Shown here: positions 2,481-63,200 of the stretch, piece after piece
Layout of the letters: every line of letters begins with the position of its first letter
Numbering within the stretch: position 1 is the stretch's first letter
Assembly (NCBI GenBank): GCA_002269645.1
Contig: NIVC01000281.1
Span: 1-64,000, forward strand
Reading direction: 5' to 3'
Length of the DNA: 64,000 nucleotides
From: Macrostomum lignano
Lineage: Eukaryota
The notes under the pieces: generated by a model
Databases searched by the model: none
Seen by the model: only the letters and a program-made list of their open reading frames with translations
Told to the model about the DNA's origin: nothing
Translations under genes and position numbers: made by a program

Positions 2481-2781
2481 CATCACTCAGTCGCAGTCGT
2501 TCTTCTTCCCTTCCTTCTTTCTTTTCAAAGATCTGTCTATGGCAAGTCCATACAAGATTTCACTCTGGAAACTTTTAGAAAATGTCTTCCGTTCTTTACA
2601 ATATTTATTCCCTTTTTTAGATTTTTCAAAAAGAAAATTTTACCATAGACAAAACTGTTTTTTAAATTTGCCAAGTCGAACTTTCAATATTATATCAATA
2701 TCAACATTGTGAAGATTATTGAAAAAAATTAATCTAAATTCGAACGCTCAGGATCAAAACCAATAGAAAAGGGTTTTGCAG

Positions 2782-12716: not shown

Positions 12717-12828
12717 TCTCGCTGTGCACCTCCTGAAGAAAATTAACAAATTATAAAAATGATTCTTCTACAACCTGATTGAGACTGAGAGAGAGAGAGT
12801 TCTCGAAACGCCTTCGCGGCTTTGGCTG

Positions 12829-12866
12829 TTTATATAGCACCGGCTTCGGGACCCCTCTGGACCAAT
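12829..12866 (-). promoter_or_regulatory. Putative ETS core promoter: TATA box with nearby CCAAT element
   Basis: TATATAAA on the minus strand at 12836-12829, 113 nt upstream of the ATG. CCAAT at 12862-12866. Confidence 0.55.
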
Positions 12867-13454
12867 GAGAACCCGGCCCGCTTGAAGTCACATGGCCTCT
12901 CGCTCCACTCTCTCTCTCTCTACCTCTCCAATTTTAGCGGTCCAAGTGAAAGAGAGGCTAGCAGAAGAGCAGCAAAAGCATAAATGGTAATTCTCTGTTC
13001 ATTTTGGCTTGGCTTGTCTGACAGAAGACCAGAGAGAGAGAGAAAGAGAGAGATACGACCAAACACCAAGATAGGGAAACCCCAAGAACTTCTATTCGTG
13101 GACTGACGGTTGACCTCTACTGTACACCACATGCTCCTAAATAGCTGTAAATACTGTAGCTTCTCTATCTGCTTCAATAGCTGACTTGCTGACCTTCATA
13201 TTGCACCCTCTCTGTGGCATTCTAGTTACATGGGAAGCTCATTCAATATCCTTTTTAACTGGAGCTTAACTCGTATTAGACTCAGAACCAGTGACTGTAG
13301 CTAAAAATAGTACTGATGTCCATCAGTATTCAGACATTGTGCATTGACGATTTTCATATAAGCATAAAATAATGCCTGTGATTGCTGAAAGAAGAGAATC
13401 AGCTCACTGTCTTTTACTCTTCGAAAACATAAATTTTAGACATCAAAACTGCTA

Positions 13455-14460
13455 TCTGGGGCTCCGCTTTCTCTCCTCTCTGGCGCTCCGCTTTCTCTCC
13501 TCTCTGGCGCTCCGCTTTCTCTCTCCTCTCTGGCGCTCCGCTTTCTCTCCTCTCTGGCGCTCCGCTTTCTCTCCTCTCTGGCGCTCCGCTTTCTCTCCTC
13601 TCTGGCGCTCCGCTTTCTCTCCTGTCTGGCGCTCCGCTTTCTCTCTCCTCTCTGGCGCTCCGCTTTCTCTCCTCTCTGGCGCTCCGCTTTCTCTCCTCTC
13701 TGGCGCTCCGCTTTCTCTCCTCTCTGGCGCTCCGCTTTCTCTCCTCTCTGGCGCTCCGCTTTCTCTCTTCTCTGGCGCTCCGCTTTCTCTCCTCTCTGGC
13801 GCTCTGCTTTCTCTCTCCTCTCTGGCGCTCTGCTTTCTCTCTTCTCTGGCGCTCCGCTTTCTCTCCTCTCTGGCGCTCCGCTTTCTCTCCTCTCTGGCGC
13901 TCCGCTTTCTCTCCTCTCTGGCGCTCCGCTTTCTCTCTCCTCTCTGGCGCTCCGCTTTCTCTCCTCTCTGGCGCTCTGCTTTCTCTCCTCTCTGGCGCTC
14001 CGCTTTCTCTCCTCTCTGGCGCTCCGCTTTCTCTCCTCTCTGGCGCTCCGCTTTCTCTCCTCTCTGGCGCTCCGCTTTCTCTCCTCTCTGGCGCTCTGCT
14101 TTCTCTCCTCTCTGGCGCTCCGCTTTCTCTCCTCTCTGGCGCTCCGCTTTCTCTCCTCTCTGGCGCTCTGCTTTCTGTCCTCTCTGGCGCTCCGCTTTCT
14201 CTCCTCTCTGGCGCTCTGCTTTCTCTCTTCTCTGGCGCTCCGCTTTCTCTCCTCTCTGGCGCTCCGCTTTCTCTCCTCTCTGGCGCTCCGCTTTCTCTCC
14301 TCTCTGGCGCTCTGCTTTCTCTCCTCTCTGGCGCTCCGCTTTCTCTCCTCTCTGGCGCTCCGCTTTCTCTCCTCTCTGGCGCTCCGCTTTCTCTCCTCTC
14401 TGGCGCTCTGCTTTCTCTCCTCTCTGGCGCTCCGCTTTCTCTCCTCTCTGGAGCTCCGCT
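13455..14460 (+). repeat. 24-bp CT-rich minisatellite
   Basis: Unit tctctggcgctccgctttctctcc; source of spurious ORF 13372..14604. Confidence 0.95.
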
Positions 14461-15074
14461 TTCTTCTCTGACTCTCTGCTTTCTCTCTTCTCTCTGGCTA
14501 TTTCATTTTCACGCCTTCAGTCAGCCAGTTTTGGTGTCTATAAGTCCTCGGTAAAGTCTGTGAAAATAACTGATAACTCAAGTTCGTTTGCACCACCAGC
14601 GTGAGCTACTTACTTACTACAGCTGCTAATGGCGGTTTCACAACTGCTGATAAGCGATAAAAGATATTTTCCCAGATGAACTCAGTAACCTCGAACGGAG
14701 AGTTACTTGAGCATGACAAATAATGTTTCTTCTAAGAGATAATTTTTTGAAAAAAACTTTGCTCTCATCCCAAATTTGCCAGGCAATAAAATTTAAACGC
14801 CCAGGCACACAGAGTGTGTCACTGCTGGTGGCTAGATGAGGATCCAGAAGGGTTTGCTGAAGTTCGGCAACTCACATTTGTAACTCTAAGATAACTGATT
14901 ATGCTGTGCCGTGCTCATGGTTTGTAAAAGCTAAAACATTGCATGTATTCGGCTGACTATCCAGAGATAAAGCTCTTGTGAGTCGGAATGACGGCTTAAC
15001 AGCTTAAGCACTTGAAACTTGCTAAGACTACAAACTCAAAACCTGTATTTGTCTGTACTTATTGGGAGAAAAGG

Positions 15075-19584: not shown

Positions 19585-22290
19585 GTTCTAATCTCATATT
19601 CTGTCTACTCCTATCTCACAAATCCTTCATTCTTATCTCATATTCTGTCTACTCCTATCTCACAAATCCTTCATTCTAATCTCATTTTCTGTCTACTCCT
19701 ATCTCACAACTCGTTCATTCTAATCTCATATTCTGTCTACTCCTATCTCGCAAATGCTTCATTCTAATCTCATATTCTGTCTACTCCTATCTCACAAATC
19801 CTTCATACTTATCTCATATTCTGTCTACTCCTATCTCACAAATCCTTCATTCTAATCTCATATTCTGTCTACTCCTATCTCACAAATCCTTCATTCTAAT
19901 CTCATATTCTGTCTACTCCTATCTCACAAATCCTTCATTCTAATCTCATATTCTGTCTACTCCTATCTCACAACTCGTTCATTCTAATCTCATATTCTGT
20001 CCTGTCTACTCCTATCTCACAAATCCTTCATTCTAATCTCATATTCTGTCTACTCCTATCTCACAAATCCTTCATTCTAATCTCATATTCTGTCTACTCC
20101 TATCTCACAAATCCTTCATTCTAATCTCATATTCTGTCCTGTCTACTCCTATCTCACAAATCCTTCATTCTAATCTCATATTCTGTCTACTCCTATCTCA
20201 CAAATCTTTCATTCTAATCTCATATTCTGTCTACTCCTATCTCACAAATCCTTCATTCTAATCTCATATTCTGTCTACTCCTATCTCGCAAATCCTTCAT
20301 TCTAATCTCATATTCTGTCTACTCCTATCTCACAAATCCTTCATTCTAATCTCATATTCTGTCTACTCCTATCTCACAAATCCTTCATTCTAATCTCATA
20401 TTCTGTCTACTCCTATCTCACAATTCGTTCATTCTAATCTCATATTCTGTCTACTCCTATCTCACAAATCCTTCATTCTAATCTCATATTCTGTCTACTC
20501 CTATCTCGCAAATCCTTCATTCTAATCTCATATTCTGTCTACTCCTATCTCACAAATCCTTCATTCTAATCTCATATTCTGTCTACTCCTATCTCACAAA
20601 TCCTTCATTCTAATCTCATATTCTGTCTACTCCTATCTCGCAAATCCTTCATTCTAATCTCATATTCTGTCTACTCCTATCTCACAAATCCTTCATTCTA
20701 ATCTCATATTCTGTCTACTCCTATCTCACAAATCCTTCATTCTAATCTCATATTCTGTCTACTCCTATCTCACAACTCGTTCATTCTAATCTCATATTCT
20801 GTCTACTCCTATCTCGCAAATCCTTCATTCTAATCTCATATTCTGTCTACTCCTATCTCACAAATCCTTCATTCTAATCTCATATTCTGTCTACTCCTAT
20901 CTCACAAATCCTTCATTCTAATCTCATATTCTGTCTACTCCTATCTCGCAAATCCTTCATTCTAATCTCATATTCTGTCTACTCCTATCTCGCAAATCCT
21001 TCATTCTAATCTCATATTCTGTCTACTCCTATCTCACAAATCCTTCATTCTAATCTCATATTCTGTCTACTCCTATCTCACAAATCCTTCATTCTAATCT
21101 CATATTCTGTCTACTCCTATCTCACAAATCCTTCATTCTAATCTCATATTCTGTCTACTCCTATCTCGCAAATCCTTCATTCTAATCTCATATTCTGTCT
21201 ACTCCTATCTCACAACTCGTTCATTCTAATCTCATATTCTGTCTACTCCTATCTCGCAAATCCTTCATTCTAATCTCATATTCTGTCTACTCCTATCTCA
21301 CAATTCGTTCATTCTAATCTCATATTCTGTCTACTCCTATCTCACAAATCCTTCATTCTAATCTCATATTCTGTCTACTCCTATCTCGCAAATCCTTCAT
21401 TCTAATCTCATATTCTGTCTACTCCTATCTCACAAATCCTTCATTCTAATCTCATATTCTGTCTACTCCTATCTCACAAATCCTTCATTCTAATCTCATA
21501 TTCTGTCTACTCCTATCTCACAACTCGTTCATTCTAATCTCATATTCTGTCTACTCCTATCTCGCAAATCCTTCATTCTAATCTCATATTCTGTCTACTC
21601 CTATCTCACAAATCCTTCATTCTAATCTCATATTCTGTCTACTCCTATCTCACAAATCCTTCATTCTAATCTCATATTCTGTCTACTCCTATCTCGCAAA
21701 TCCTTCATTCTAATCTCATATTCTGTCTACTCCTATCTCGCAAATCCTTCATTCTAATCTCATATTCTGTCTACTCCTATCTCACAAATCCTTCATTCTA
21801 ATCTCATATTCTGTCTACTCCTATCTCACAAATCCTTCATTCTAATCTCATATTCTGTCTACTCCTATCTCACAAATCCTTCATTCTAATCTCATATTCT
21901 GTCTACTCCTATCTCGCAAATCCTTCATTCTAATCTCATATTCTGTCTACTCCTATCTCACAACTCGTTCATTCTAATCTCATATTCTGTCTACTCCTAT
22001 CTCGCAAATCCTTCATTCTAATCTCATATTCTGTCTACTCCTATCTCACAAATCCTTCATTCTAATCTCATATTCTGTCTACTCCTATCTCACAATTCGT
22101 TCATTCTAATCTCATATTCTGTCTACTCCTATCTCACAAATCCTTCATTCTAATCTCATATTCTGTCTACTCCTATCTCACAAATCCTTCATTCTAATCT
22201 CATATTCTGTCTACTCCTATCTCACAAATCCTTCATTCTAATCTCATATTCTGTCTACTCCTATCTCACAATTCTTTCATTCTAATCTTA
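19585..22290 (+). repeat. 44-bp satellite array (~2.7 kb)
   Basis: Unit tctaatctcatattctgtctactcctatctcacaaatccttcat, about 60 copies with four recurrent variants. Confidence 0.97.
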
Positions 22291-44856: not shown

Positions 44857-45759
44857 TTTTCCCTAGTGAAGAAACTCTTCCAGAGAACTCTTTTTTAATA
44901 AACTTCTAGAGAACTATAATACTTACTTGTGGCTTGTACGCTCGTAGCAGAATATCATACAGCAGTGAGAGGTTTTGCATAGAATGTAACTGTATTTTAC
45001 ATATATATGTGATAACTTTGGGACAAATAAAGGTGAATTACATGTACTTCTTGAGATGCTGTTACTTAAGTTGATTGACCTGCTTGTGGCGTTCTGACGG
45101 AGCGAGTTCGCGTAGACGAGCTGGGCTGCTATTGTTGGCTAGCGGAGCTCAGAGTCATATATTAGAATGATAAAACAGTGTTGCCGAATTTCTTTTTGAT
45201 GGAGGAGAAATAGAAACTTATTGTAACGAAATATCCGATGATTAGTATATTTAACGATTGCACCAGTATATTAGGAATTGGACGACACCAACTTAGCCAC
45301 ACATCACACCTACGCCTCACCAAGGTATAACTTAATAGATAACAGCATTTAAATTTGTGCCAAGAAGACTCCGATAAAACAAAATCTATGCATTTTAACT
45401 TTGATTTATAAACAGAAGAAAACAGTTAATAAATAAATTACATACATTTGGAATACTTGATAATTGAAATTACGAAACCGTTACACTCGCCTCCCTAATA
45501 ATAACAGCAAAGGAATTTATTTAAACTATTGAAAATCGAACGATGGAATAAAATACAGCTGAGCCGATTACAAAAACAAGGGAACGACACTCATCATGAA
45601 AACTACACTCAAATGCTTACATATTGGGGCTTAAAACATGTAGGATGAAACAAAAAATTCCTGTAGGCTGATAAGCAAAATATATAAAGCGAGTCAGAGC
45701 CAATGACAGGTCAGAGCAATAAGCAGTTAGAGTTAAATTTCGCCAGCGCAGCAGCGACC

Positions 45760-45980
45760 AGGATGTCGCCAGCGGTGACGCGACCAGGATGTCGCCAGCG
45801 GGGACGCGACCAGGATGTCGCCAGCGGGGACGCGACCAGGGTGTCGCCAGCGGGGACGCGACCAGGATGTCGCCAGCGGGGACGCGACCAGGATGTCGCC
45901 AGCGGGGACGCGACCAGGATGTCGCCAGCGGGGACGCGACCAGGATGTCGCCAGCGGGGACGCGACCAGGATGTCGCCAG
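45760..45980 (+). repeat. 26-bp tandem repeat in the 3' untranslated region of the Gypsy element
   Basis: Unit gacgcgaccaggatgtcgccagcggg, about 8 copies, each with the stem gcgac-N6-gtcgc. Confidence 0.9.
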
Positions 45981-46351
45981 CCACGAACGAAGCCAGCCCA
46001 CAAGACAGCACAGCAAGCACAAAACACAAAACAAGCCGAAACCGCCGAAAGAGAGACGCAAACTCCACCAGCACAGCAGCAACACAGAACAGACAAAACA
46101 GACAGCAAACTAACCCCCCCCCCCTAACAGAAAGAAGAACGAAAAAAACAAAGACCACACGCTACTCAGAACCCCGACTCCGATAGCACCGATTGATGAT
46201 GGACGACAGAAACCTGGCTGGCCTGCGCACAACCCGACCAGACCTGGTGGTGATAATCGGCGCCGCCACTTCTTCAGAGGACTGAGAATGAGAGCTCGTG
46301 GTCCCAGAGCTGCTTTCCCGCGGCTCCAGTTTGATGTCAAAACGTTCTTCG

Positions 46352-49300
46352 TTACAAGTAGGTGATTGATTTGGCTCTAGCAGCGAGGGATTGGAATCGG
46401 TACTCGATCGAGGCCGGCTGCTTGAACTCGGCTTGCTCGTTTTCTTGCACTAGCTCTTGCCGACTTGTCAAACTGATCGCTGCGACCGAACCTGACACAC
46501 TAGCCACTGCTTCAAACCCGACACCCTGATTAGGATTCTCCTCTGGTTCTGAGCGCCGTTCGTCAACAGCGGGAATCGAACTTCCCTGCTCCCACGACTC
46601 TCCACAGTCCAGATCCAGAGAGCCCCTATCTGGTAAGCCTGCTGCGGTGAAAGATCTGTCACTCGAGGATTGCTGACCTTGGATGGAAGCCCGAGGCTCT
46701 TCCGTCTCAGGTGCCAGTCCAAATCTGTCGATAAGGTCAATGTACGCTGGTCTTCTCACACACCTCTTCAGCCTGTCAATGTTGTAGACATTGTGCTTTG
46801 GGTTTGGTATTCCGGCGTCTGACACTGGGGCAAGCCGGTAATTTCTGTCCGATACCTTTTCGATGATCTTGTACGGCCCAAACCACACCGCAGTGTCCAA
46901 GCCCTTGTGGTCCGGATTTAGGACCCACACGAGCTCTCCCTCCTTAAAGACCGAATGGTGAGTGCCCCGATCGTAGTAGCGCTTCTGGCGCTGTTGGGCT
47001 TTGCCTCGAATCTGTCTGGCCAAGGTCGATACGGTCACCAGCTCGTGGTATAGTTTATGGGCGAACCTGTTGGGCTGATATTGGTCCAGCGCTGGAGGCC
47101 CGTATTTAAGGTCAAGGGGAAATACGAGCTCACGCCCCAAGAACAGGCGCGCTGGCGTGAAGCCAGTAGACTCAGCCTCCGTCGCTCTGATTGACAGGCC
47201 AACGAGGCGGGCTGCTAGCGACCAATTACACTCTCGGCCCTGACACACGGCACGAATTTGACTCTTAATTGTTTGAATAGCTCTTTCAGCCTTGCCATTG
47301 GCTTGGGGCCGGCGAGCTGCGATCCGAACCTTTTCGATTTCAAGGAGGCTGGTGAGCTCTTCCAACACGTGGTTGATGAACGCCGTGCCATTGTCGGACA
47401 CAATCGCTTCCATGGCCCCCCACCTGACAACCCACTCGGTAAGAATCGTTTGTGCAGTGGTTTCAGCAGTTATATCTGGCACAGGAATAATTTCGACCCA
47501 GCTGGTAAAGCGGTCAATGAGAACCAGCAAAAACCTGTTGCCGCTTTGTTCCAGGAATGGACCTGCGTGGTCCACGTGAACCACCTGACCCGGGTAGCCG
47601 GCAAGGGTGGGCTGCATCGGTTCCTTATTTTTACGATTAGTTCGCTTTGTTCGGGCACAGGTCTCACATTCGGCGATGATCCCCGTGACATGAGTCTTTA
47701 GTTCATTGATCTGGAAACGGTTTTTTAGCGCTTTCGTGGTTTTTGTCACCCCACAGTGATTCAATGCTTGATGGTAATTCAGAACGATTTCATCGACGTC
47801 CGCTGTCTCGGGAATGACTAAGACAGAGCGGAAAGGTTTGCCTTTCTTGGCGGGCTTCTGGATGTACAACAGACCCTCGTTAAGACTTAGTTTCTCAAAA
47901 CTTGAGCACAATACTCTGATCTCACGACTGCATGACTGGAGCTCTTCGCTACTCGGTTTCTGCCCACCCTTCACGGCTTCTATCAGCCTTAAGATGTCAA
48001 TTGAGGATTCTTGAGCTTGCCTTGCCCAGTTTTCTTCCTGCTGATCCGACAACCCATCCTCCGAATCAGAATCGCTTGCAACGACTGGTTTAGCAGGGTG
48101 CTCCACAACCCGGATTGCTGGCGCTTCAGCAAGCATTCCCATCTCTGCCTGCTGATGTCCAGCATTCTCAGAAAGCAGCTCTGGTTGATGGAAAGTTTGA
48201 GTCTCAACCTCCTTATTTTCAGATTTAAAATTTTGATTCTCATCGTTCTCTGTCTGGAGAGCGACAGAACACGTTTGAGTCATTTTTGTTGTAAGAGTCT
48301 GTACGACCGCAGTCGTGTTTTTGATCTTACCAGCAAATTTGTCCTTGAACTCTGGTATCTGGCTACATGTCGGACAGTCGTGGTGATCGGCTCGAAACTT
48401 TGGGTTTCGGCTAAGAAAATCAGCGTTTAAGTGCTCTTGACCAGCCCTGTGCCTAACTTCAAAGTCATATTCCCCGAGGCGTTCAGGAGGTGTCTGGTTA
48501 ATTTTAAAGTCATAGGCTTCAATTGTGGCCAACCATTGGGCCAGCATGCCCGTGGCATGTCTCTTTGTGTGCAACCATTTCAGCGCTGCCGCGTCGGTGC
48601 GTACGACGAAGGGGCGGTCCAGCAGATAGACTCGAAAGTTCTCGAGCATCATCACCACGCCCAGAAGTTCCCTCATCGTGGCACAATAGTTTCTCTGCGC
48701 AGCGGTAAATCTTTTTGAAGCGTAACTGATCACTTTTTCTTGATCACCAGCCCCTTGTTGGGACAAGACAGCACCAATTCCCTCGAGCGAGCTGTCGCAA
48801 TCCAAGATAAATGACCCTGCATTCGGTGAAAAGTCGGGATAAGCTAAGACTGGTGGCGAACAGAGGCATGACTTCAGCTCAGAGAACGCTTTGTCATGCT
48901 TTTCATGCCAGACAAACTTCTCAGCCCCTCTTGCCAGAGCGTAAAGTGGCGCGGCTATCACCGAGAACCTAGGGACGAATTTCCTGTAGTAGTTACAGAA
49001 GCCCAGAAACGACAGCAGCTGCTTCTGATCGATCGGTCTAGGCCAATCGCGAACGGCATCAGTTTTCTCTGGGTCAGCTTCTATTCCCTGTCCCGAAACT
49101 ATGAAACCAAGAAACCGCACCTTATCCCTGAATAGCTCACATTTGCTGGGTTTGATTTTTAAGTTTGCCTTGCGCAGCCTCCAAAGTACAAGCGCCAAAT
49201 TCACTATCATCTCGTCATTGTCCCTAGCTTTTACGATGACATCGTCGAGGTAAATCAGACTGACCTTGAGCAACAATAGCTGGAAGACTCGGTGCATCAG

Positions 49301-49523
49301 CCGAGCGAATGTTGCTGGGGCGGTTTTGATGCCAAAAGGCACAACTTTCCATCTAAAAGTACCTTGTGGGCACGAGAAGGCAGTGAAATCCCTGTCTTGC
49401 TCACGAATTCCTACTTGCCAGTAGGCGGAGGTCAGGTCAAGGCTCGAAAATACCTGAGCCCCAGCCAAGCTGTCGAAAGACTCATCAACCAGAGGCAGGG
49501 GAAAGCTGCAAGGCTTAATGGCT
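46352..49523 (-). CDS. pol: Gypsy Pol remainder (RT, RNase H, integrase), joined to the upstream ORF across a +1 frameshift
   Basis: YLDD, RNase H DCDSSLEGIGAVL, integrase HHCC zinc finger, DHAG..SDNG..NGKAER and GPY. Confidence 0.95.
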
Positions 49524-52034
49524 GGCTTTATTGGTCTGCCGATAGTCAACACACAGTCTCTGGCTACCATCCTTCTTCCGCACCAGGACGATTGGGGACG
49601 CCCACTCGGAGTCACACTCTTCTATCACACCGCATTCTAGCAATTTGGCAATATGCTGGTCTAGGAACTCTTTTTGTGCCGGTGTGGTTCTCCGAGAGGG
49701 CTGAAATACCGGTCGGCAAGTTGGGTCTTTCAGCTCAATTGACATTTCAGTTACCGATGTTCTTCCTAAATCTGTATCAGATGTTGAAATTTGGCTATTG
49801 AAAAAGTGCAGCAGCTTTATGGTCGTTGTCAGTTGCTGAGATGTCAGGTTTGATTTTCCCAGGCGGAACTGCCCTTTTAGCCACTCAGCAGTAGCCCTAT
49901 CGGGGTACGGCAGCTTTTCTAGGTGCTTTCCCAACCTCTCAGCATTGTCTATGGTAAAGTCTCGCTCGTGTAGCTGAGTGCGAGTGACAATTTCGTCAGT
50001 CCCTACATCCTGGAAAGAGGCGACTTCCTGTCCCTTCTTGATGGATATCGGGTGGTCTTCACTATTCAGCAATCGGACCAGAACATGGCGGCCTGTGCTA
50101 ACACTATCAAGTGACCTGGCTACCAGGCATTCTCCGTCTGCCCGGAAAAGACGCGGTCCAAGGACTCCTTGAGCACCTGGAACCGCTTCAGAGACCCGAC
50201 TTGGAACCACCGCTTCTGACCGAGGTGCCATCTCTAGATCACAAGCGGCTGTCACACGTCTCACGCGGTAGAGCCCGCTGTCACCCTCAATGATCGGAAT
50301 GGCCTCTCCATTAACAGTAACTTTGCCATCAGCGAGTAGCAGGTTGACCTTAAAACTCTTTAGGAAATCCAAGCCAAGCAAGACATCCGATAACTTGGTT
50401 TCCATGACCAAAAACACCTGGGTTTTAGTTAGTTTCCCTAAAGAGACCTCGCAACGCAATGTACCTATAATTTCTGTGGTAGTGCCGTTGAAAGCAGTCG
50501 CAGAGCGTCTATTTGTAGCCTCTGTAAAAACGTTGTTGATGGGGTCAGCTTCTACTAGCTGATCCTTTACGCGAACTCCCATGACGCTGGCGTTAGCACC
50601 GGAGTCAAGACATGCTATTATGCGACTCTCCCCCACTCCCAACTGAACAAAGTAGCTCGAGTCCGTCTTGAACTCACTTTCAAGTGCTGCAGATTGTTCG
50701 CAATTCGCCGGTGAGGCCAACTCACTGACACCTAGTGCACGATCACTTGGTTTCCCAGCTTCAGCCACCCGGTAAAACTTAACCCTGAGTCCCACCATCT
50801 GGTGGACTGTTTTGCACTGAAGCCCCTCATCAAGCTGCTGGAAATGTACGAATACATTGTCGCCCATAAGAGCCGAACGGATGAACCCATGACTCTGAAA
50901 CCACTGTGTGATTACCCCAGTCTCCATAGGTTCTGCTCCCTGTCTTACTTGTTCCTTGTCAGTGCGACCCCTGGGATTCAGAGGAGGCGGGTGAGGACAG
51001 TCTGCCACTAGATGATCAGTTAGGCCACATCGGTAGCATGCTCTTGGTGGGCGGCTTTTGACTGGTGCTCTGTTTGCATAGGCCAGATGGTGCGATGGGG
51101 CTGGCCGAGCATAGTAGCTGCGTCCCTGATTTTTCATGCCCTCGTCACTCAGATGTACCTTATGTGAGTTCCGTTCCAGAGAACTAAGAGCTGGCTGTTG
51201 AGCAATCAGCTTTTCTAATTCTTTTATTCGCGCCTCAAGCTCTGCTGTCTTGTCTGAGCCCACAACGCAAACCTTGGCCACGGATGATTGACCAGGATTT
51301 AAGAGCTTTCGGACACCCGCTATCTCTCTGGCCTTCTTGGCCAGGTCCTCGGAAGAGAGGCAAGGGTTTTCCCGACTAGCCAGCAGCAGCTTTTCAGCTA
51401 GACTTCGGTCAACAAGTCCATGGCAAAACCGAGCTCGGACCAGTGGCTCATACTGATTTATTGGCAATTCAGCTGCGTGTGCTAAGCTAATCAGCCGATC
51501 AAAGTACTGCTGAACATCCTCCATCTCTTGCTGCTGCGCACTGGCTAGTTCTAAGTAGCTTTTGTCTTTCTCGGAGACATCCGTGTATCGCTGACTCAAA
51601 GCTTGCAGGGCTGTGGCGGTGTCCTGCTTGTGAAGTTGGTTGTGGAAACAGTACTCTTGGCATTCAGGAGATAGAAGCGAAAGTAGAACCGCTGACCGCT
51701 GCTTTAAAGGAATATTGTGTGCTTCGACGTAAGTGAGAAACTGCGTCTGCCACAGGTCAAACCTCATCTTCGGCATATATGGCTGGGGCGGCCGAAGCCG
51801 GACATTGCTACTGCCTTCGGGTTTTTGGGTCTGCAAATCAGCTGCTGAAGAGGCGGTCGCACGACTCATGCTGGCAGTCAACACCTGAGCAAAGCTCTCT
51901 AGAAAGGTCTGCATGCTTGCAGGAAGGCCAGAATCAGCGGAGCCGCCAGCAGCGGCTGGCTCCTCATTACCAACTTCAGGACCAACTGGTGCCTGGGCAC
52001 CATTGCCAGACTCTTCAGCTTCGTGATCTGCCAT
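49515..52034 (-). CDS. gag: Gypsy Gag - CCHC knuckle - cold-shock domain - aspartic protease - RT N-terminus
   Basis: CYRCGLTDHLVADC, CSD-like TGVITQWF..HGFI..DNVFVHF, protease CLDSGA, RT start WASPIVLVRKKDGSQRLCVDYR. Confidence 0.93.
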   Translation of the reverse strand: MADHEAEESGNGAQAPVGPEVGNEEPAAAGGSADSGLPASMQTFLESFAQVLTASMSRATASSAADLQTQKPEGSSNVRLRPPQPYMPKMRFDLWQTQFLTYVEAHNIPLKQRSAVLLSLLSPECQEYCFHNQLHKQDTATALQALSQRYTDVSEKDKSYLELASAQQQEMEDVQQYFDRLISLAHAAELPINQYEPLVRARFCHGLVDRSLAEKLLLASRENPCLSSEDLAKKAREIAGVRKLLNPGQSSVAKVCVVGSDKTAELEARIKELEKLIAQQPALSSLERNSHKVHLSDEGMKNQGRSYYARPAPSHHLAYANRAPVKSRPPRACYRCGLTDHLVADCPHPPPLNPRGRTDKEQVRQGAEPMETGVITQWFQSHGFIRSALMGDNVFVHFQQLDEGLQCKTVHQMVGLRVKFYRVAEAGKPSDRALGVSELASPANCEQSAALESEFKTDSSYFVQLGVGESRIIACLDSGANASVMGVRVKDQLVEADPINNVFTEATNRRSATAFNGTTTEIIGTLRCEVSLGKLTKTQVFLVMETKLSDVLLGLDFLKSFKVNLLLADGKVTVNGEAIPIIEGDSGLYRVRRVTAACDLEMAPRSEAVVPSRVSEAVPGAQGVLGPRLFRADGECLVARSLDSVSTGRHVLVRLLNSEDHPISIKKGQEVASFQDVGTDEIVTRTQLHERDFTIDNAERLGKHLEKLPYPDRATAEWLKGQFRLGKSNLTSQQLTTTIKLLHFFNSQISTSDTDLGRTSVTEMSIELKDPTCRPVFQPSRRTTPAQKEFLDQHIAKLLECGVIEECDSEWASPIVLVRKKDGSQRLCVDYRQTNKASH

Positions 52035-54210
52035 TCAACAGCAGTCGCAGCTTTTGAACAAATGCAAGACAGAAAAGAAGAATGAGAGAGAGAAGGACCC
52101 AGTTGGCGGCAGTCTAGCCTAACCCTAGCACAGAAGCAAACACTGACTAAAACCGCCAACTTAAACTAAAGCCCTACCTCTACGGCAATCAGAAAACACT
52201 CTCACCACAAAGCAAGCGGGCTGGTCTTCGCAAATGTCCGACGCGGCTTGTTCTGTTGCTTCAGCTTGGATTGCCGTCATGCACAGGACTCTAGGACAGC
52301 CAGAAACAGTTGGCGAAGCAGTTCAGGGACAGTAGCCGATGCGCGATACAGTGGAGAATCCTTGGTCTTGACACGTTACTAGTAGTAGGCTCAGTCGCGG
52401 CGAGTAGCTGGCAAAAATTCTTGGGCTATCACGATGGGTTGGAAGCTAAAACTTGCACGCACTTGAATTGGGCAGCCGCGGCATGGAAATTGTCGACTCA
52501 ATATGCAGGGGTAGATTTATAAAGTTTCAGCCTAATGTACACCTCACAATGTACAGCGAGGGCCAGTGAAAATTCACAAGTGCAGTAATAATTTGATAGC
52601 TGCTTAATTTAGGCTGTCCAATTGGGCGCTCTCGTACAACTTGGGGTGGTTGACAGTGGTCTGACTTGCCGAGATGATTTTCCTATTACGGTTCAGAAAT
52701 AGATGATTCAGCAGTTCTCTATCGGTTCGGCTCGCTCGAACCGTTCTGACTTGATGATGACGATGATGCAGATTGATGAAGGTGCCGAACCCAATAGCAG
52801 CGCAGTGCAGCTCGTCTCGGTGGGACCTCCAAAAATTATGTGGCGTTCTGACGGAGCGAGTTCGCGTAGACGAGCTGGGCTGCTATTGTTGGCTAGCGGA
52901 GCTCAGAGTCATATATTAGAATGATAAAACAGTGTTGCCGAATTTCGATTTGATGGAGGAGAAATAGAAACTTATTGTAACGAAATATCCGATGATTAGT
53001 ATATTTAACGATTGCACCAGTATATTAGGAATTGGACGACAACAACTTAGCCACACATCACACCTACGCCTCACCAAGGTATAACTTAATAGATAACAGC
53101 ATTTAAATTTGTGCCAAGAAGACTCCGATAAAACAAAATCTATGCATTTTAACTTTGATTTATAAACAGAAGAAAACAGTTAATAAATAAATTACATACA
53201 TTTGGAATACTTGATAATTGAAATTACGAAACCGTTACATGCTCCTACATGTATGAAGCTGAGATTTGAGTCTTGTTTAATGGAGTGGAGAGAGATCTGT
53301 TGAACACCAATAATCATTAAAAGAATGTTTCGAGCAGGACAATACTTTATAAGACTTCATTTTTACTAACAGTAGTGTAGTTTGGCTAATTACTTTTGGG
53401 TAAACTTTTGATTTCACCCCTTGGCCTCCCACCAGTAAAATTCGCTACAGTTCGGAATTCAATTTAGGCTAATAATAACTTAAAACAAAGTTTTCGGGCG
53501 TATTCAGCTTACACAGAGGCATCGGAAATCAACGACACGAGATGCTCTTGGCACGAGTGTTTGCCGAAAGCAGCCTCGCGATCCTACTTACATCTATGCG
53601 CAACTCCTATGGTGCTGCATGGCACCCCTGTTACTGTAATTTTACTAGTTTCACAATATATTTATATGTTGATATAAACATATTCTGCTCTTGGCGCCAA
53701 GCTATTGGCACCCTGGACTCAGTTGAGACACATCATACGCGCCGGATTAACTGTTACACGGACAGGCAGTATCATACACGTACAATCAAAATTTTGAGCC
53801 TTAAATATGTGTGATAACACATAGAATAAAATTAGTGATATTGGTGCTGATCAAGATATGTTTATTACTGAGCTGTTTTATTCTTTTGGCCCACTATTTG
53901 TTATTTCTTGATATTTTAAAGTATAAAATGCGTTCTGAGAAACGTTTTCTTAACTCACGGATGGAATTGAATAATTGTTAAAGTAGAAATACCATTTTCG
54001 TAGACTTTAAATCGCGCTTTTTTATAGTTTAAAGATACGCTCTATTATTGGCTACTGCTGTTTAATTTGTTGCAATTTTTGGTAATAAGAGGCAATAGGC
54101 AAGAGCGTGCCCAGACCACCCTACTAAGCGAAGCCCCTCGCCTCAAGGCATACCCGCATACAATTGATATAAATTGCACTATAATTTAAGTCACCTTCAA
54201 AGACAAAGCT

Positions 54211-57200
54211 ATGTCATTAAAGTTGTTTGTTTCCTCAGTTTCTGGAAATATGAAGGTGAGTCTAATTTTTCATATGCCAATCAATATTATTGTTGTATGG
54301 AGCTACAAATGCTTGCCTGAAATTTTCACTTGTCTTAGGCCTTAGTGGCTAAACTAAAACCCCATTGTTGTGTTGAGAAAGTCAGACTGAATTTAGGGGT
54401 ACACACGAACTTAGCCCAAGTTGGCCTACCGACTGGTATATTTATACTTACATATTCATTTAGCTGCGACAGATCAATATCGGAAAACAGATGTACATAG
54501 CATATGTACATATCTGCAAACCAACTACACAACATTCACTCTCCCTTGCGAACAAGTTGCCTTGTCGATGAAATATTCGAAAATCGATTACATATTCAAG
54601 AGCAATAAAACAGACATGAATATTAGAAATAAAATATTTTTTTGATATCAGAATAAAATATTTGAAAGAGTTCTACATTAAGTTCCAATTTCAAAACCCT
54701 CAAATAGAAAACTCGAAAACCAAAGGCTTGCAACTCAAAAGTCCTTTTCAGTCATTGCAATCAATGAGTCACCACATCCCCGTACCACTGCGGTGGAGCC
54801 CGACTCCTCACACTCGCTCGAATTGACGTTGGTGCTCCTTGATATGGCAGCAGCTCTTTGGCCACCTCTGCCGCTGCTCCCGCCGCCGCCGCGGGTGTCG
54901 GAGCGGTTGTGGCGGCTGGCGCGGGCCACAGCGGCAGCGCTCCCGCCGGCCGCTCCACCCGCATGCAGTTGTCGACGTGCCACCGAGAGCCGTCACTGAG
55001 GATCACTGTGGTGGCACTCGCGATTCTCGAGATCTCTAGCAGCTCGGACAGCCGGCTGCTCAGCTTGCCACGCGCAAACGGCCGCCTCACGCGCACCCAG
55101 TCGCTGACCCTGAACGCCGGCGGAGGCCTCCTGGCCGAGTTGAGCTTGCTGAAGACTCGCTGCTGCTTCTGCTTGATGCTGCCTGCCAGGTTGTGCTGCG
55201 ATGGCGTCCTTGGCTGCAGTGCAGTCAGCGGGGTGCTGATTTTCCGGCTCGTCATCAGCTCCGCCGGTGACACCCCCATCAGTGTGTGCAGGGTGGCCTG
55301 GTATGACCACAGCAGCGCCCTCACCGCGTACTTGAAACCGTAGCCGTCCTGCAGGTGCGTCTTCAGGCCGTCTTTCAGAAACCGGTTGAAGCGCTCGACC
55401 GCAGCGTTGCCTTGCAGGTGGTAGTGCGGCGACTGGCGGTGCTGGATGCCGCAGCGCTGGAGGAAGTCTTTGAAGTCACTGGACATGAACTGCGGCCCGC
55501 CGTCCGTGTTGATGCTCTTTGGGAGTCCCCAGCGGCTGAACCACGTCGTCAGGGCGTCGATCACGTCAGCAGTGGTCACTGTGGACATGCAGGCTGCTTC
55601 TGGCCACTTCGAATGCAGGTCGTACAGCACCAGAATGAAGTGACATGAGTTCAGCGCCGAATGCAGCTCCCCGAAGATGTTGAGCTGAAGCTCCTCCCAA
55701 GGTCGAGTCGGCCACTTCATCGGAGTCAGCACCGTCTTGGATGGCTTGAAGTTTTTCTCGCTGAGCAGGCAGGCCTCGCAGTGCCGCATGAACTCCTCGA
55801 TTTGGCTGTCGATCTGCGGCCACCAGACCGAGTCCCGGCAGTGCTGCTTCATTCTGCTCACTCCGAGGTGCCAAAAGTGCGCCAGCTGCAGCGTCTTCTC
55901 TCTCAACAACCCGGGGATCACCGCGCGCAATCCATTCACCAGGCACTTGCCTTCATTCCAGACTGTGAGCTGCTCCTTGATCCGCCAGAACGGCTGCAGC
56001 TCCGGCCTCAACTGCTTGATGGAACTTGGCCAGCCCTCCAGCGTCATCTCGATCGCCTGGCTGATCACCGGGTCCTGTAGAGATTCCTCAGCCAGTTTGC
56101 TTGGGCTCACGATCTGCAGTGCGCCAGACAGCAGGACGGCATTCACTTGTAGCTCCGCCAGGTCCTCCTCGCTGCTGTTGTTGCAGGCGCCGTGTCGCGA
56201 CAAAAAGTCCAGAACGGTGTTCTTTTTCCCGGGAATGTGGCAGACCTGGAAGTCATACGCGAGCAGGCGGTCGGCCCACCGGTGCAGTCTCAATGGCCGG
56301 TGGCCGCTGCCCTGAGCCATCAGCAACGTAGTCAGCGCCTGATGGTCCGTGTGCAGCTCGAATCTCCGGCCGAACAGGAAATAGTGCCACCTCTCACAGG
56401 CGAAGATGCATGCCAATGCCTCTCTTTCAGACGCGGAGTACTTGCGCTCAGTCGCTAACAGGGTTCTGGACGCAAACGCGACTGGTCTCCGGACGCCGGC
56501 GCCGTCTTCTTGAAGCAGAACGGCGCCCAGAGCATGCGCTGAGCTGTCGCAGGCAACGATGATCTTCTCATCCGGGCTGAAGAACCTCAGACAGGTCGGT
56601 GCCAGCACCATCTTCTTGAGCGTTGTGAAGGCCTTCTGGCAGTCTGCGGACCAGTCCCAGGGCACATCTTTCCTCAGCACCCTCAGCAGCAGCTCGGCAA
56701 CATCCGACAGGTTTTGAAGAAAGTTCGCGTAAAATTTCACCATTCCAAGGAATGCCGCCACCGCCTCAGCGCTCTTCGGCTTCGGCACCTGCTCGATAGC
56801 GTCCACGTTTGACTGCATTGGTTGCAGACCGCTTGCAGAGATGATGTAGCCCAAGAACTGCACAGACTCAGCAGCCCACTGGCACTTGCCTGCGTTCAGA
56901 GTGACGCCATGGGCCAGCAGCTTGTCAAGCACCGCAGTGAGCCGCTTGTGATGCTCAGCCTCACTGGCAGCGTGCACGACTATGTTGTCGATGTAGTGCA
57001 CCATTCCTGAGCAGCCGTGCAGAATCTTGCTCAGCACCTTCTGGAAAGCTGCCGGAGCGCTGTTGAGACCGAAACAAACCCGCTTGTACCGATAGAGACC
57101 CTTCTCCGTGATGAAGGCCGTCATATCGCGTCTGTCCTCGGCGAGCTCAAGCTGCAGATACGATGAGTTCAGATCTAGTTTTGAGAAAACCGTCGAGCCC

Positions 57201-60200
57201 TTGAACTCCGTCGTCAGCTCCACGAATGTCGGCAGAGGCTGCTTGTCCGGCACAATTGCCTTGTTGGGGCACCTGAGGTCATTGCAGATTCGGATCTTAC
57301 TGTCAGGCTTTGGGACGACCACCAGATTCGAAATCCACTCGGATGCCTGAATCTCCTCGACGATCCTGTCCGCTAGAAGCTGATCGATCTCAGCTTGGAC
57401 CTTCTCCTTGAGGCTGAGCGGCGTCCGGCGGAGAGGCTGCACCACTGGAGGCACTGCAGGGTTCACTCGGGGCCGGTGCTCAAACCCTCAAATCCGGCAG
57501 AGTCCTCGCGTCAGCTGCTCGAAGCGGTCTGGCAACCAGGCCGGCAGCTGCCTGGTCTTGTCCACGGTGTGCACCAGGTCGCCGAACTGATGTTGCACCT
57601 TGTTCACCTCCGCCTCGCCTCGGCTTGCCATGGCAACTGAGTCGCCAGTCTCGATCGCACTGGCTTCTGCAATGCTGGTCTCCCACTGCTGACTCAGCGT
57701 CACCGCCGTCTTGAGCGTCAGGCCGTCCTCGATGAGCAGGCGCTCTCTGATCCGCCTGTCGCTGACCTTCTCCACGATCTGGTCGCGAATCATCTCGTCC
57801 GTCATGCCGCCAAACTCGCACGAGCCGGCCAGCGTGTACAGCGCTGCCACAAAGTCAGCGATTTTCTCACCGGGTCGCTGCCCTCGCTGCCAAAACCTGT
57901 GGCGTTCCGCCATCACGTTGGTCTTGCCACCAAACTGCTCCTTCAGCAGCTTCACGGTCTCGTCGAATCCCAGCGGTGGCTATTCACCATCCGAATTCTG
58001 AGATGGCGGTGGCTGCATCGCTGCGAAGATCCGCTGTCCTTCCGCACCCAGGCAGTGCAGAAGCAGGGCTCGCTTTCTCGCGTCTGGTAGAGTGTCGAAG
58101 CCCGCCGCCATTAAGTAGTTGTCAAACAGGCTCTTCCACTCATTCCACGGTCTTGTTGGCGGTCCCGGTTGAGGCAGGAATTGCTCTGGTGGCGAGATGT
58201 TAATCCTTGGCACCTCCGATGTGCTAGAAGCTGTCATTGACTGGGACATTCTGAGCACTGTGTACTTTTGCTGTTTGGCGCTTGTTTACTTTGCAGTGGC
58301 GGCCTTTCAAGCTGGGCTGTCACTCAACTTCTTAGTGAAAAGTCAAAACCCCAAATTGTGGGGGTTGGCCTAGCTTGCGATGCCAATGTTGTGTTGAGAA
58401 AGTCAGACTGAATTTAGGGGTACACACGAACTTAGCCCAAGTTGGCCTACCGACTGGTATATTTATACTTACATATTCATTTAGCTGCGACAGATCAATA
58501 TTGGAAAACAGATGTACATAGCATATGTACATATCTGCAAACCAACTACACAACACCCATGCCATAGGCATAGTTAGGATTTTGTATTAATATTAGTATT
58601 AGTGTATGCCAGGTCTAGTGGGGGAAAAAGTAAAGGACCACATTTGTACACTAGGACTAAAAAAGTTTTCAACTTTGTATAGAAAAATTGTATGCATTTT
58701 TCATTCTTAAATTTATTATTCATACAGGCCTAACCCACACTCCAGATCATGTAGTATATGCCTGAAAATTCAGGTGTGCATTGGCCTTGCATGCCAAAAT
58801 TAGGCATGCATAGTTTCATTGGCATATATCACTCCTAAGAAAATAGTATGCATGCACTTTATAGAATCACCCATAAGAGTTATTGTGAAGTAGAAAAAAT
58901 TAAGAAAGTTAATTTGTAAGCATAAATTTCAAGCTCATAAAGAAGCATTTAAAAAAGTATTTGTGTATATCAATTTTTTTGCTATGAATAGTATTGCCCA
59001 AAAAGCATAAAAATCAACCAAATAATCTACTTGGTTGATTTTTATATTGCAAATAAGGGTCTATTATACAATTTAGAAAAGATCATTTATTGTCACAATG
59101 TAAAAAAATCATTTATTGTTGCAACACTGGCATATTTTTGAGAAAAGTGTGCACAATTTTTTTGGCATACACTTGTAATTTTTCAATTTTTGTTTGAGCA
59201 TGTATTTAGCATGATCTGGACTAGGCCTATGAGGCCTAACAAACATAAAAATTACACACTTGCAATATGCAAAAAAGACATTTAAAAAAAAGGATTTTAA
59301 AGCCTAAATACTTTTTTGCTACAATAATTAATAGAACTTTTATACAAAATCCTAGATATATTTCATGCATACTAATAAAAACTTATATATATATATGCAT
59401 ACCTTTCAACCAACTTGCATATTTGCATATAATTTTTTGACTAAGTCAAACTTAGCAACTAATTTTTGCAATGCAGCAACTATAAAAAACTTACAAATGC
59501 ATGATTTCATTTAAAAAGGTTGCATATTCCACTTATCACATGTAAAACAACATTTATTGCAAACCAGGATCAAATTCTTGCTTGGGGGTAGGAAAACGTG
59601 CACATATATTTTTGTAGCAGCGCGCAAGCGTGCACGCCAGCTATATAATGCAGATCATGGCCCATGCACAAAAAATGAAATTTCATTTTTCTAGTAACTG
59701 TTTTTGCTAAAAACTATTATTCTTTGTTTTATTTTTGTTTTGAAATTTTCCAGCATAAAAACAACCTGGACTATGAAAAGTAGGAGAACTTGAGCATGCA
59801 TATGCTACATGGCACATAACCATGTTAAATGCATGTAAAAGTCAAATCCTATCTGTGATTCTGTAGCAAACAGCTTCTTGCGCAAGCGCATACAATGGAA
59901 CGCGCATACACTTCTTAAGAGTGCACAAGTAGGCTCCTTTTCAGCTTGCACAAATTTGACAAGTGCGCACAAATGCGTAACAACTTTTGTGCAAGAATTC
60001 CATTCTGGATTGCAAATAACAAATAAAAAATTAAATAACAAATAAACAAACCCCCTTGTGCAACTAAGGAGGGAGCAGTTGCTCCTCCTTTAAGTAGTGA
60101 CTAGAAAAAAATCAAAAGAGACCAAGTGAGTTTTTGCCACAATATAGAGTTGCACCTCATCCGCCCTCTTGGGTCCTTACCTTCTAAAATCTGCCCTTTC

Positions 60201-63200
60201 AACAAATTCATTGTTAACATTAATGACAATGTCAATGACCAAAGATGCAAAAAACAGCAAAATATATGTTCAACAAAAAGTTACAACATTACAAATATAT
60301 TTAAATTTACCTAAATGCCTAATTAAACTCTTTGTTTATGACAATGATCATGAAAATTAAACAACTTCTTAATAATGAACTTTTATAATAAATTAAAGTT
60401 GTGAGCTTTATTGCTAAGTAAGTTACATTTACTGTATGCTTACTTTTAATAATATTATACAATATGCATACAAGTTTTTAGATTATTTTTATTACCTTTT
60501 TAGCCTGTAAATTGCTTGGATGACCTCTGTGTTTTGCTAAAAAAAGATGAAAAAGCAAAGACAGTGTATTATGAAGTCTGTTTAGGAAAAAAATGCAATT
60601 TCTATATTTTATATGTTAACTTTATTAGATTATTGCATATTAATGATTATCAGTTAATTTTCAGCTAACCTAACATAATAACCTGGGTTGGTATGGGTGC
60701 CCAGTTTGGAGTAAAATATGTTATATATAATATAACAGGAGTAGTGACGCTCTGTCTATACGCTCGTACTTTTATGGATATGAGCAGGTGTGATGACACT
60801 TTGCAATAATAGTTCAATCACTCTGGTGTTGTGACACTCAGAGTTCACGCTGCAGCTCAGTCTGGTGAGGTGACACTCTCGAGTACTTCTAGCTTCGATA
60901 CTATAGGTTATACACACTATATAAAGTAACCAGTATAGTACTACAATAATACACAATATACAACACTGCTATGCTGTAGTGGTCACAGTCATAGGCATGA
61001 TAATGCTTTAGCTGTGGAATCACTGCTACAGCAAAGCCTTGGAAAAGCTAAAGAAGCAAACAAACTTGGGGGTCTTATTGGTGCCAGAAACTATGGAGCT
61101 TGTTTGACTATTGCCACCATTTGACTGCTTTATTTGCTCCTAATCAATTGAGTTCTCACAATAAGAGACCATATAGATACAGCTCACTTGAGTATTGCAT
61201 GCAAAATTTAGAGTCTTTGCTATAAGAGACCATCTTTATGGCTCATTTGAATATTGCTAGGTTAGTTTGAAAAGCTAGGCATGGGGCACAGAGCGGAGAG
61301 TAGGGAGCTGGCTGGGCTAGGCTTGAGCACTATATACCAATTAATAGGGTAGAGGGGCAGACAGCGCGAGAGAGACGCCAAACAAAAGAGATGACCCCTC
61401 AGCCAATCAGGATGCCCGCCAAGCAGATCTGATTGACTGTGGGCCAGAAAAGAAAAACACAAAAACACAAGCCTAGCCAATCATTGGCTGTCGCAGGGAA
61501 AGACTCAAGCTCGGCCAAGTGCCCCCCCCCCCAACCAGCCAGAACTGGTCTAGGGATGGCCGCCTAGGGTGCATGCAAAAACAACTCAAAAAGTGCAAGA
61601 GCACTCAACAGGCCAGACACCACATTAACAAAATTAGGAGTTAATAAGTTAAGATTTTTTTGTTTTGATGCTAATGTGTTTGCCATTAACAGAAGTTAAG
61701 ATTTTCATTAATGGTGCCCAACATTGGCTACTACTATGATAATAATGTATTATATAGTTTTGTTTTATAGAAAAAAAAGCAAGTAAGAATTTTTAGAGGC
61801 CACTTTTATCAATAAAATACATTTAAAAAGAGAGGAAGTTTTCATTTTAGCACTAAAAGCAGAAACTCTTGCTAATATTCAATAATTGGCTATAACTATA
61901 GGATACTTTATTTTCTGGCAACTATACTAAAATAGGAACCTATGAAAGTTACAGACTATAGCACAAAATCCAATTTAGTATTGTTTTGGAAAGACAAAAA
62001 ATTATAAAAATAGAATGGAACTACTTATTCATTATTGACACTTTTAACTTAATTTAGGGGGACTTACTGAGATGTCAAAGCTGAGAGGTCAGAAGCTAGA
62101 TGTAGTTTATTTAAAAAAGTATTCCATTCTACAAATATAAATTTTAATTTATATTAAAATTTAAATTTTTTTAACAGGGCTATGCAAATACACATTTTAG
62201 ATCAAAGAACGTCAAGCATATGTGAAGCGAATTCTGGACAGTTTGAATGTACAATATGAAGAGATTGACATATCAGATGACGCCAATGCAGAGCTCAAAG
62301 CTCAGATGCAGACTGCTGCTCGCAGCCATGGCAAGCCTGTGGTGCCACCGCACCTGATGCGAGATGATGCGTACCTAGGCGTGAGTATATTATCAATTCT
62401 ACCCCCCCACTTCCTCCCTCCATGTCCATGTGCTTTCTTGGTTATCTCCAATCAGTTCATTTTTTGATAAGATGTTTTATGTTTTATGTACTCGATTAAT
62501 CTCGTTTTTCTATCTACTTAATTAGTACAAGTATTTTAAGTACTCGTGCACTTATCAGAGATGTACTTTTGTTTTTCCAAGGATGGGGACGACTTCTCTG
62601 AAGCAGTCGAGGTTGACACTGTCGGCGCGTTTCTACAGCTGCCATCAGCTGCGGGCGCTGAGGTGCGTAATGCATGATGGTGCTATCACTGCTATGAGTT
62701 GATGCAATAACAATAGTGCAATGAAGTGATGCAATAGCAATGGGTGCAATGAAGTGATGCAATAGCAATGGGTGCAATGAAATGATGCAATAGCAATGGG
62801 TGCAATGAAATGATGCAATAGCAATGGGTGCAATGAAATGATGCAATAGCAATGGGTGCAATGAAATGATGCAATAGCAATGGGTGCAATGAAATGATGC
62901 AATAGCAATGGGTGCAATGAAATGATGCAATAGCAATGGGTGCAATGAAATGATGCAATAGCAATGGGTGCAATGAAATGATGCAATAGCAATGGGTGCA
63001 ATGAAATGATGCAATAGCAATGGGTGCAATGAAATGATGCAATAGCAATGGGTGCAATGAAGTGATAAAAATAAAGTTTTAGTGTTTTTGTGTGTTTATT
63101 ATGTGTTATTAGTTACTCGTATTATCATACTTCAGCATCAGTTCTGAACTTTTGATCTGCTTTCAGAACGGCAACAAAGACTTGATCAAAAGCGGCGACA

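Follow-up and report, generated by a model that had tools for sequence, protein, structure and literature searches.

A cold-shock domain between the zinc knuckle and the protease of a Ty3/gypsy retrotransposon of Macrostomum lignano

We analysed a 64,000-nt stretch of the Macrostomum lignano genome (contig NIVC01000281.1, positions 1 to 64,000; hereafter the window) and describe here a Ty3/gypsy-type long terminal repeat (LTR) retrotransposon on its minus strand, whose Gag-Pol polyprotein carries a cold-shock domain (CSD) between the CCHC zinc knuckle of the nucleocapsid and the aspartic protease. The ORF1 segment in question is confirmed as a bona fide CSD with an oligonucleotide/oligosaccharide-binding (OB) fold, and the same arrangement is found in three diverged lineages of the element. 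Judging from sequence comparison and structure modelling, we consider it probable (about 0.6) that the domain was captured by the ancestor of this clade, has been kept under purifying selection and works as a second chaperone module of the nucleocapsid.

Identification of the cold-shock domain

The domain is encoded in the first open reading frame of the element (ORF1, 839 aa, 49515..52034, minus strand), which reads without interruption through Gag, CCHC, CSD and protease into the start of the reverse transcriptase (RT). From its N-terminus, the Gag core (aa 75-277, 51204..51812), which has Gag-only matches in the representative search and no sequence match among solved structures in PDB, is followed by a single CCHC zinc knuckle CYRCGLTDHLVADC that constitutes the nucleocapsid (aa 333-346, 50997..51038), a proline-rich, basic and unconserved linker of 24 aa (50928..50996), the CSD of ~69 aa (aa 370-438, 50721..50927), a second unconserved linker (50661..50720) and the aspartic protease (50277..50660), all on the minus strand. 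Translation of the minus strand from 50927 to 50718 gives METGVITQWFQSHGFIRSALMGDNVFVHFQQLDEGLQCKTVHQMVGLRVKFYRVAEAGKPSDRALGVSEL, and beyond the second linker the protease reads ACLDSGANASVMG / IIACLDSGANASVMG, its DSG motif lying at 50606-50598. An earlier note on this DNA, made from the letters alone, had placed a CSD between the CCHC knuckle and the DSG protease; sequence profiles, structure model and fold search bear this out, and the translation and positions that it quoted were reproduced exactly (minus strand, window 50600-51200).

When the CSD segment was used as a single query against PDB, five matches were obtained, all of them CSDs, the best being Drosophila Unr CSD1 (E=0.034). We then built a profile from retrotransposon segments only, namely those of the window element and of two M. 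lignano polyproteins, P0001 (obtained by a pol-based search) and P0121 (obtained by the exhaustive search described below). At E<=1 this profile matched 40 PDB sequences, essentially all cold-shock proteins. UNR/CSDE1 domains took the top seven ranks (best E=1.2e-5), followed by bacterial Csps (6e-3 and weaker) and then by Y-box proteins (0.28 and weaker), and no Lin28 chain was among the matches. A profile made from two of the retrotransposon sequences gave the same picture. An exhaustive HMMER search of 1.84 billion representative proteins with a profile spanning Gag, knuckle, CSD and protease returned 331 proteins at E<=1e-3. Among the matches listed, only P0001 and P0121 matched over the full length of the profile. 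About 90 of the best 150 of these 331 proteins match the CSD positions alone (profile ~320-395), in three to eight stretches each and with E values down to 1e-19; these are multi-CSD proteins, and some of them, including ones from Plasmodiophora, Chlorokybus and Tetraselmis, bear the source name 'cold shock CspA family protein' or 'CSD domain-containing protein'. Significant CSD matches were thus reached both in PDB and in the exhaustive search. The closest affinity is to UNR/CSDE1 rather than to bacterial CspA, with which the earlier note had aligned the segment, or to Y-box proteins or Lin28.

The residues expected of a CSD are in place. In a 67-sequence alignment, the window copy has the consensus residue at all (nearly) invariant columns of the domain (two Gly, the Phe of GF, His, Val, Phe and Ala). 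Both ribonucleoprotein motifs, RNP1 and RNP2, are present with their aromatic platform and read QSHGFI and VFVHF in the window copy, GNFGFI and LFFHR in P0001, and QNYGFI and LFVHI in P0121; in the window copy a Trp sits six residues before GFI. The Trp, the RNP1-like GFI and the RNP2 VFVHF had all been singled out beforehand, and W, GFI and F-x-H are unchanged across the three lineages. In structures of CspB bound to oligonucleotides, these residues are solvent-exposed and stack on the bases. Two such structures, 2ES2 and 3PF4, are among the PDB matches.

An AlphaFold2 (AF2) model built with the 67-sequence alignment reached a predicted local distance difference test score (pLDDT) of 89.3 and a predicted template modelling score (pTM) of 0.76. 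It contains five strands in the canonical order (model residues 8-16, 20-25, 31-35, 55-61 and 70-76), which form the five-stranded antiparallel beta-barrel of ~70 residues that is typical of a CSD. Foldseek comparison of the model with PDB gave 41 matches at E<=1e-3, and the best 50 were all CSDs. The best match was again Unr CSD1 (4QQB; E=3.9e-6, template modelling (TM) score 0.80, root-mean-square deviation 2.1 A), followed by human UNR CSD1, E. coli CspA, CRHSP-24 and YB-1, with no Lin28 in the top 50. In the viral structure database BFVD the best matches were phage Csp and giant-virus S1/OB proteins, and the top 50 included no reverse-transcribing virus. A model computed from the single sequence was discarded (pLDDT 52.6), its fold search giving only noise.

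Relatives, constraint and state of the element

The order Gag, CCHC, CSD and protease is common to the window element, the P0001 family and P0121, the last two also from M. lignano. The P0001 family comprises at least five annotated CSD copies that differ by 0-2 aa, the near-identical copies of P0001 being P0272, P0274, P0275 and P0276; P0272 and P0274 are intact polyproteins of 1879 aa. At the P0001 locus (NIVC01001096.1:19755-33049) the element is bounded by 629-bp LTRs (2634-3262 and 10921-11549 of the locus) that are 100% identical, so the architecture belongs to evidently recently active elements, as the earlier note had anticipated. Compared with the 401-bp LTRs of the window element they are longer, and the two pairs are unrelated, as the DNA matches between element and locus include no LTR stretch. 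Shortly downstream of the P0001 element there is a large array (11706-13295) whose period is ~176 bp. In public databases P0001, P0121 and the members of their clusters are labelled 'Reverse transcriptase', 'Integrase catalytic domain-containing protein' or 'CCHC-type domain-containing protein'.

Neither the knuckle-CSD-protease segment (155 aa) nor the Gag-CSD-protease segment (586 aa) retrieved any relative in word-indexed homology searches; relatives surfaced only when the pol ORF was used as the query. The comparison covered 120 pol relatives, which come from fishes, molluscs, a choanoflagellate and metagenomes. A hidden Markov model (HMM) built from the 67-sequence CSD alignment matched P0001 alone among the 120, and none of the 11 knuckle-bearing relatives from outside Macrostomum was matched. 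The distance from the knuckle to the D[ST]G motif is 46-81 aa in these 11 relatives, 134 aa in P0001 and ~130 aa in the window element. Taken together, the pattern of HMM matches and the longer spacing indicate an insertion of ~70 residues specific to this clade.

Among the three lineages, identity is 44-48% in the Gag core, 71-79% in the knuckle, 39-51% in the CSD and 55-63% in the protease, and falls to 0-17% in the linkers that flank the CSD (15-17% on the knuckle side, 0-14% on the protease side). The CSD is therefore about as conserved as the Gag core. The proportion of nonsynonymous differences (pN) between the window element and the M. lignano locus gives a similar ranking, with 0.43 for the CSD, 0.65 and 0.71 for the two linkers in the same order, 0.35 for Gag and 0.30 for the protease. 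In pN and identity alike, the segment looks like a domain under constraint whose flanking linkers are free to vary. The segment is neither confined to the window copy nor, by these comparisons, evolving like neutral sequence, since it is conserved above its linkers in three diverged lineages.

The whole element spans 8,155 bp (45085..53239, minus strand), as read directly from the LTR pair and its flanks and from the similarity of its pol to gypsy polyproteins. Comparison of the two flanks by blastn delimits a 5' LTR (52839..53239) and a 3' LTR (45085..45485) of 401 bp each, with TG...CA termini (TGTGG...TTACA), that match at 398 of 401 positions (99.25%). A 4-bp target-site duplication (TSD), TGCT, flanks the element at 45081-45084 and 53240-53243. 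A putative TGG-initiated primer-binding site (PBS) TGGAGGTCCCACCGAGAC lies 7 nt inward of the 5' LTR (52814..52831, minus strand); since an ARAGORN scan of the whole window found no tRNA gene, no tRNA is assigned to it. The polypurine tract AGGGAGGCGAG abuts the 3' LTR (45486..45496, minus strand). The second frame, ORF2 (1087 aa, 46352..49615, minus strand), encodes the rest of RT, RNase H and an integrase with a GPY/F-type C-terminus, at which no chromodomain was seen. It shares 61% identity with P0001 across 82% of its length; the precomputed Pfam matches of P0001 include RVT_1, RT_RNaseH, Integrase_H2C2, rve and Asp_protease. A Gag with CCHC followed by protease, RT, RNase H and integrase is the domain order of Ty3/gypsy (Metaviridae) elements, and the TG..CA ends of the LTRs and the short TSD are likewise those of this group.

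ORF1 ends at a premature stop produced by a frameshift within RT. Comparison with relatives traces the shift to a 4-bp tandem duplication, GCCA GCCA (49519..49526, minus strand); the relatives are uninterrupted across this site (CIDYRAVNKLIRPCSFPLP) and encode single polyproteins of 1760-1879 aa. The break between ORF1 and ORF2 is not a programmed gag/pol frameshift, since it lies inside RT and arises from the duplication. Either this duplication truly disables a young insertion or it stems from an error of assembly; unless the latter holds, the frameshift makes the window copy non-autonomous. The youth claimed earlier for the element is upheld by the near-identical LTRs and the TSD, but with its RT frameshift the window copy is not intact.

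An array of 26-nt tandem repeats occupies the 3' untranslated part of the element (45685..46033), with ~9-13 copies of the unit TCGCCAGCGGGGACGCGACCAGGATG lying downstream of the pol stop codon and upstream of the polypurine tract. A few lineages of LTR retrotransposons in M. lignano have heat-shock elements in their LTRs; the heat-shock element GAAnnTTCnnGAA does not occur anywhere in the window. A second, unrelated Ty3/gypsy pol fragment (54761-57466, minus strand) is found 1.5 kb away from the CSD element, on the side of its 5' LTR; this 901-aa ORF with RT, RNase H and integrase is ~29-33% identical to the set of pol relatives used for the CSD element. The window from 900 to 45000 (and again at 62700-63066) is a dense mosaic of dozens of different tandem-repeat arrays. 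Their periods are 4-45 nt and the longest reach 2.7 kb; one of them, at 19586-22288, consists of 61 copies of a 44-nt unit. Most of the long 'ORFs' in the first 45 kb (e.g. 3051-4001 and 13372-14604) are translated tandem repeats. No Rfam family reached its gathering threshold in the whole window.

Origin and possible role of the domain

The donor of the domain was most likely a cellular gene of the UNR/CSDE1 type, and the capture was probably not recent. The first part of this proposal follows from the nearest relatives, which are UNR/CSDE1 CSDs both by sequence and by fold; the second follows from the closest cellular CSDs being only ~25-35% identical to the retrotransposon domain, which also leaves no donor that could be named. 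Origins from bacterial Csp, Y-box proteins or Lin28 were considered as well and rank below the UNR/CSDE1 type in the PDB profile search and in Foldseek.

We propose the following course of events. An ancestor of the clade would have taken in the CSD in frame between its sole CCHC knuckle and its protease. The clade, so far seen in Macrostomum only, would then have diversified into at least three lineages that retained the domain under purifying selection. Made as part of Gag-Pol beside the zinc knuckle, the CSD would serve as a second nucleic-acid-binding and chaperone module of the nucleocapsid. Its exposed aromatic platform (W, GFI and F-x-H) could grip single-stranded genomic RNA, and the domain may aid the melting and annealing of RNA during packaging, placement of the tRNA primer and strand transfer. 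This suggestion is made because the CSD adjoins the sole knuckle, because the fold is one that binds and melts single-stranded RNA or DNA, and because the aromatic residues that contact the ligand have been kept. Host CSD proteins act as retroviral cofactors; YB-1 supports human immunodeficiency virus (HIV) at early and late steps (PMC6040738). Since host CSD proteins serve retroviruses in this way, encoding a CSD in cis is a plausible gain, by which the element would have internalised a task for which retroviruses rely in part on proteins of the host such as YB-1.

Several points weigh against this reading, some touching the identity of the domain and others its function. With the single segment, the NCBIfam models CspE/CspD gave only E=0.05-0.13 (best 0.047), far under their cut-offs, and the Pfam CSD family (PF00313) is absent from the precomputed matches of P0001; from these weak scores we conclude that the domain is divergent. 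The absence from the Pfam matches also means that routine Pfam/InterPro annotation misses the domain, a practical warning that a CSD in such polyproteins is overlooked by standard annotation. The first aromatic position of RNP1 is occupied by His in the window copy (SHGFI) and not by F or Y, and RNP2 of P0001 ends in Arg (LFFHR). Because most sequences in the alignment behind the AF2 model are cellular CSDs, the model is biased toward the CSD fold; the sequence evidence is independent of this bias. Close relatives with a CSD are found in M. lignano only. The window copy itself is defective. A formal dN/dS is not computable because synonymous sites are saturated between the window element and the M. 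lignano locus (proportion of synonymous differences, pS, 0.8-0.9). RNA binding and chaperone activity are properties that we infer from sequence, and the protease may release the domain together with the knuckle.

The CSD might instead act as an effector on translation or on host factors, by boosting the translation or stability of the element RNA or by acting as a decoy that competes with host CSD proteins or RNA-silencing factors, perhaps after release by the protease as a small protein of its own. UNR/CSDE1 is an internal ribosome entry site (IRES) trans-acting factor and a translational regulator, and the closest relatives of our domain are CSDs of this type; furthermore, unconserved linkers on both sides are the layout expected if protease sites surround a released product. 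UNR works through a multi-domain arrangement, however, which a single CSD does not offer, and the domain follows directly on the knuckle, where nucleocapsid functions are encoded. The sequence indicates neither cleavage sites nor partner-binding motifs, and we regard an effector role as unlikely.

A purely structural reason for keeping the domain appears less probable still. Here the CSD would be a spacer, or a module for dimerisation or assembly, that positions the protease or delays its activation within the single-ORF Gag-Pol. A family that encodes a single long polyprotein (1879 aa for both P0272 and P0274) needs some other control of the Gag:Pol ratio and of protease timing, and the CSD does adjoin the protease; the solvent-exposed aromatics (W, the F of GFI, and F-x-H), however, are invariant in three lineages and would be unneeded for a purely structural role.

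That the segment has no function, being a chance resemblance or the decaying relic of a one-off chimeric host insertion, could be argued from the marginal single-sequence matches (E=0.03-0.05), the poor single-sequence AF2 model (pLDDT 52.6) and the frameshift in RT of the window copy, but this is contradicted by the data and highly improbable, since the evidence from profiles, exhaustive search and fold is in each case significant and specific, three lineages with ~40-50% identity in Gag have the domain in frame at one and the same place and conserve it well above its linkers, and M. lignano copies that are intact and evidently recently active carry it.

Transgenesis and LTR-reporter lines are established for M. 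lignano (PMC5730564, PMC12801592). Because intact and apparently recently active copies reside in this same animal, the proposal that the CSD is a second nucleocapsid module is directly testable.

Comparison with known systems

The best match to the retrotransposon domain, by sequence and by structure, is found in UNR/CSDE1 (Drosophila Unr CSD1, 4QQB; human UNR CSD1, 1WFQ) and in protist and algal multi-CSD proteins. UNR/CSDE1 and the retrotransposon domain share the pattern E-x-G-x-I...(F/Y)GFI...(F/V)F(F/V)H...(E/Q)L. Proteins of the UNR type are cellular, with five to nine CSDs in tandem, whereas the element has a single CSD inside Gag-Pol and is therefore not a member of the UNR family. 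The retrotransposon CSD also keeps the Trp of bacterial Csp and Y-box proteins, which UNR CSD1 lacks.

Accessory domains are known from other Ty3/gypsy elements, and the fixation of an added domain in LTR retrotransposons is regarded as rare (PMC9289625). Examples are an ORF for an AlkB N6-methyladenosine (m6A) demethylase in orchid elements (PMC9289625) and, in planarians, the multi-domain Burro elements (PMC6431247); a cold-shock domain is mentioned in neither of these two papers. Like these acquisitions and the chromodomain, the CSD represents a rare case of a cellular domain being captured and then kept through retrotransposition and diversification, and the orchid AlkB, like the CSD, has an activity directed at RNA. 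Chromoviruses are the Ty3/gypsy elements that carry a chromodomain. Both the domain and its position differ: the CSD lies in frame between nucleocapsid and protease and forms neither a C-terminal extension of the integrase nor an ORF of its own. The documented additions (chromodomain, AlkB, extra RNase H) have each been informative on the dealings between element and host.

The LTR retrotransposons catalogued in M. lignano belong mostly to the Mag clade, and also to CsRN1, Gmr1/Osvaldo and Mdg3 (PMC12801592, bioRxiv 10.1101/2024.12.18.629116). They agree with the CSD-bearing elements in genus, in superfamily and in encoding single-ORF polyproteins; the two surveys annotate GAG, PR, RT, RNH and INT only and leave a cold-shock domain unmentioned. 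In the full-text literature, with Repbase, Dfam and GyDB outside the scope of the search, we found no published CSD in a retrotransposon or gypsy Gag, nucleocapsid or polyprotein, and no description of the order Gag-CCHC-CSD-protease, which agrees with the novelty supposed in the earlier note. The capture of accessory domains by Ty3/gypsy elements is known; for a CSD placed between nucleocapsid and protease we found no report, and this arrangement is apparently undescribed.

The canonical retroviral or Ty3/gypsy nucleocapsid, with one or two CCHC knuckles and basic flanks, occupies the same position at the C-terminus of Gag, immediately upstream of the protease, and shares the C-X2-C-X4-H-X4-C knuckle. 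It is presumed to serve RNA packaging and chaperoning, and to this the M. lignano element adds an OB-fold of ~70 aa. A well-understood RNA chaperone fold placed exactly at the nucleocapsid would amount to a natural experiment on nucleocapsid modularity, and a CSD in Gag bears on the recruitment of host YB-1 by retroviruses as well as on the convergent pairing of CSD and CCHC. We suggest tentatively, at somewhat less than even odds, that these elements are the first described lineage in which the nucleocapsid of an LTR retrotransposon has been extended by a captured UNR/CSDE1-type CSD, that they converge on the design of Lin28 and the plant CSPs, and that the domain is required for packaging or reverse transcription in active elements.

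Lin28 and plant CSPs combine bipartite recognition of single-stranded RNA with RNA chaperoning. As in these proteins, the CSD and a retroviral-type CCHC knuckle stand on one polypeptide in the M. lignano elements. The earlier note had drawn the same parallel: the combination in reversed order is indeed present, and a closer kinship is not, given that Lin28 appeared neither in the sequence matches nor in the fold matches. In Lin28 and plant CSPs the CSD precedes the CCHC knuckles, whereas in the retrotransposon a single knuckle precedes the CSD, within a polyprotein that also carries protease, RT and integrase. The likeness is an analogy of design and not membership in the same family.

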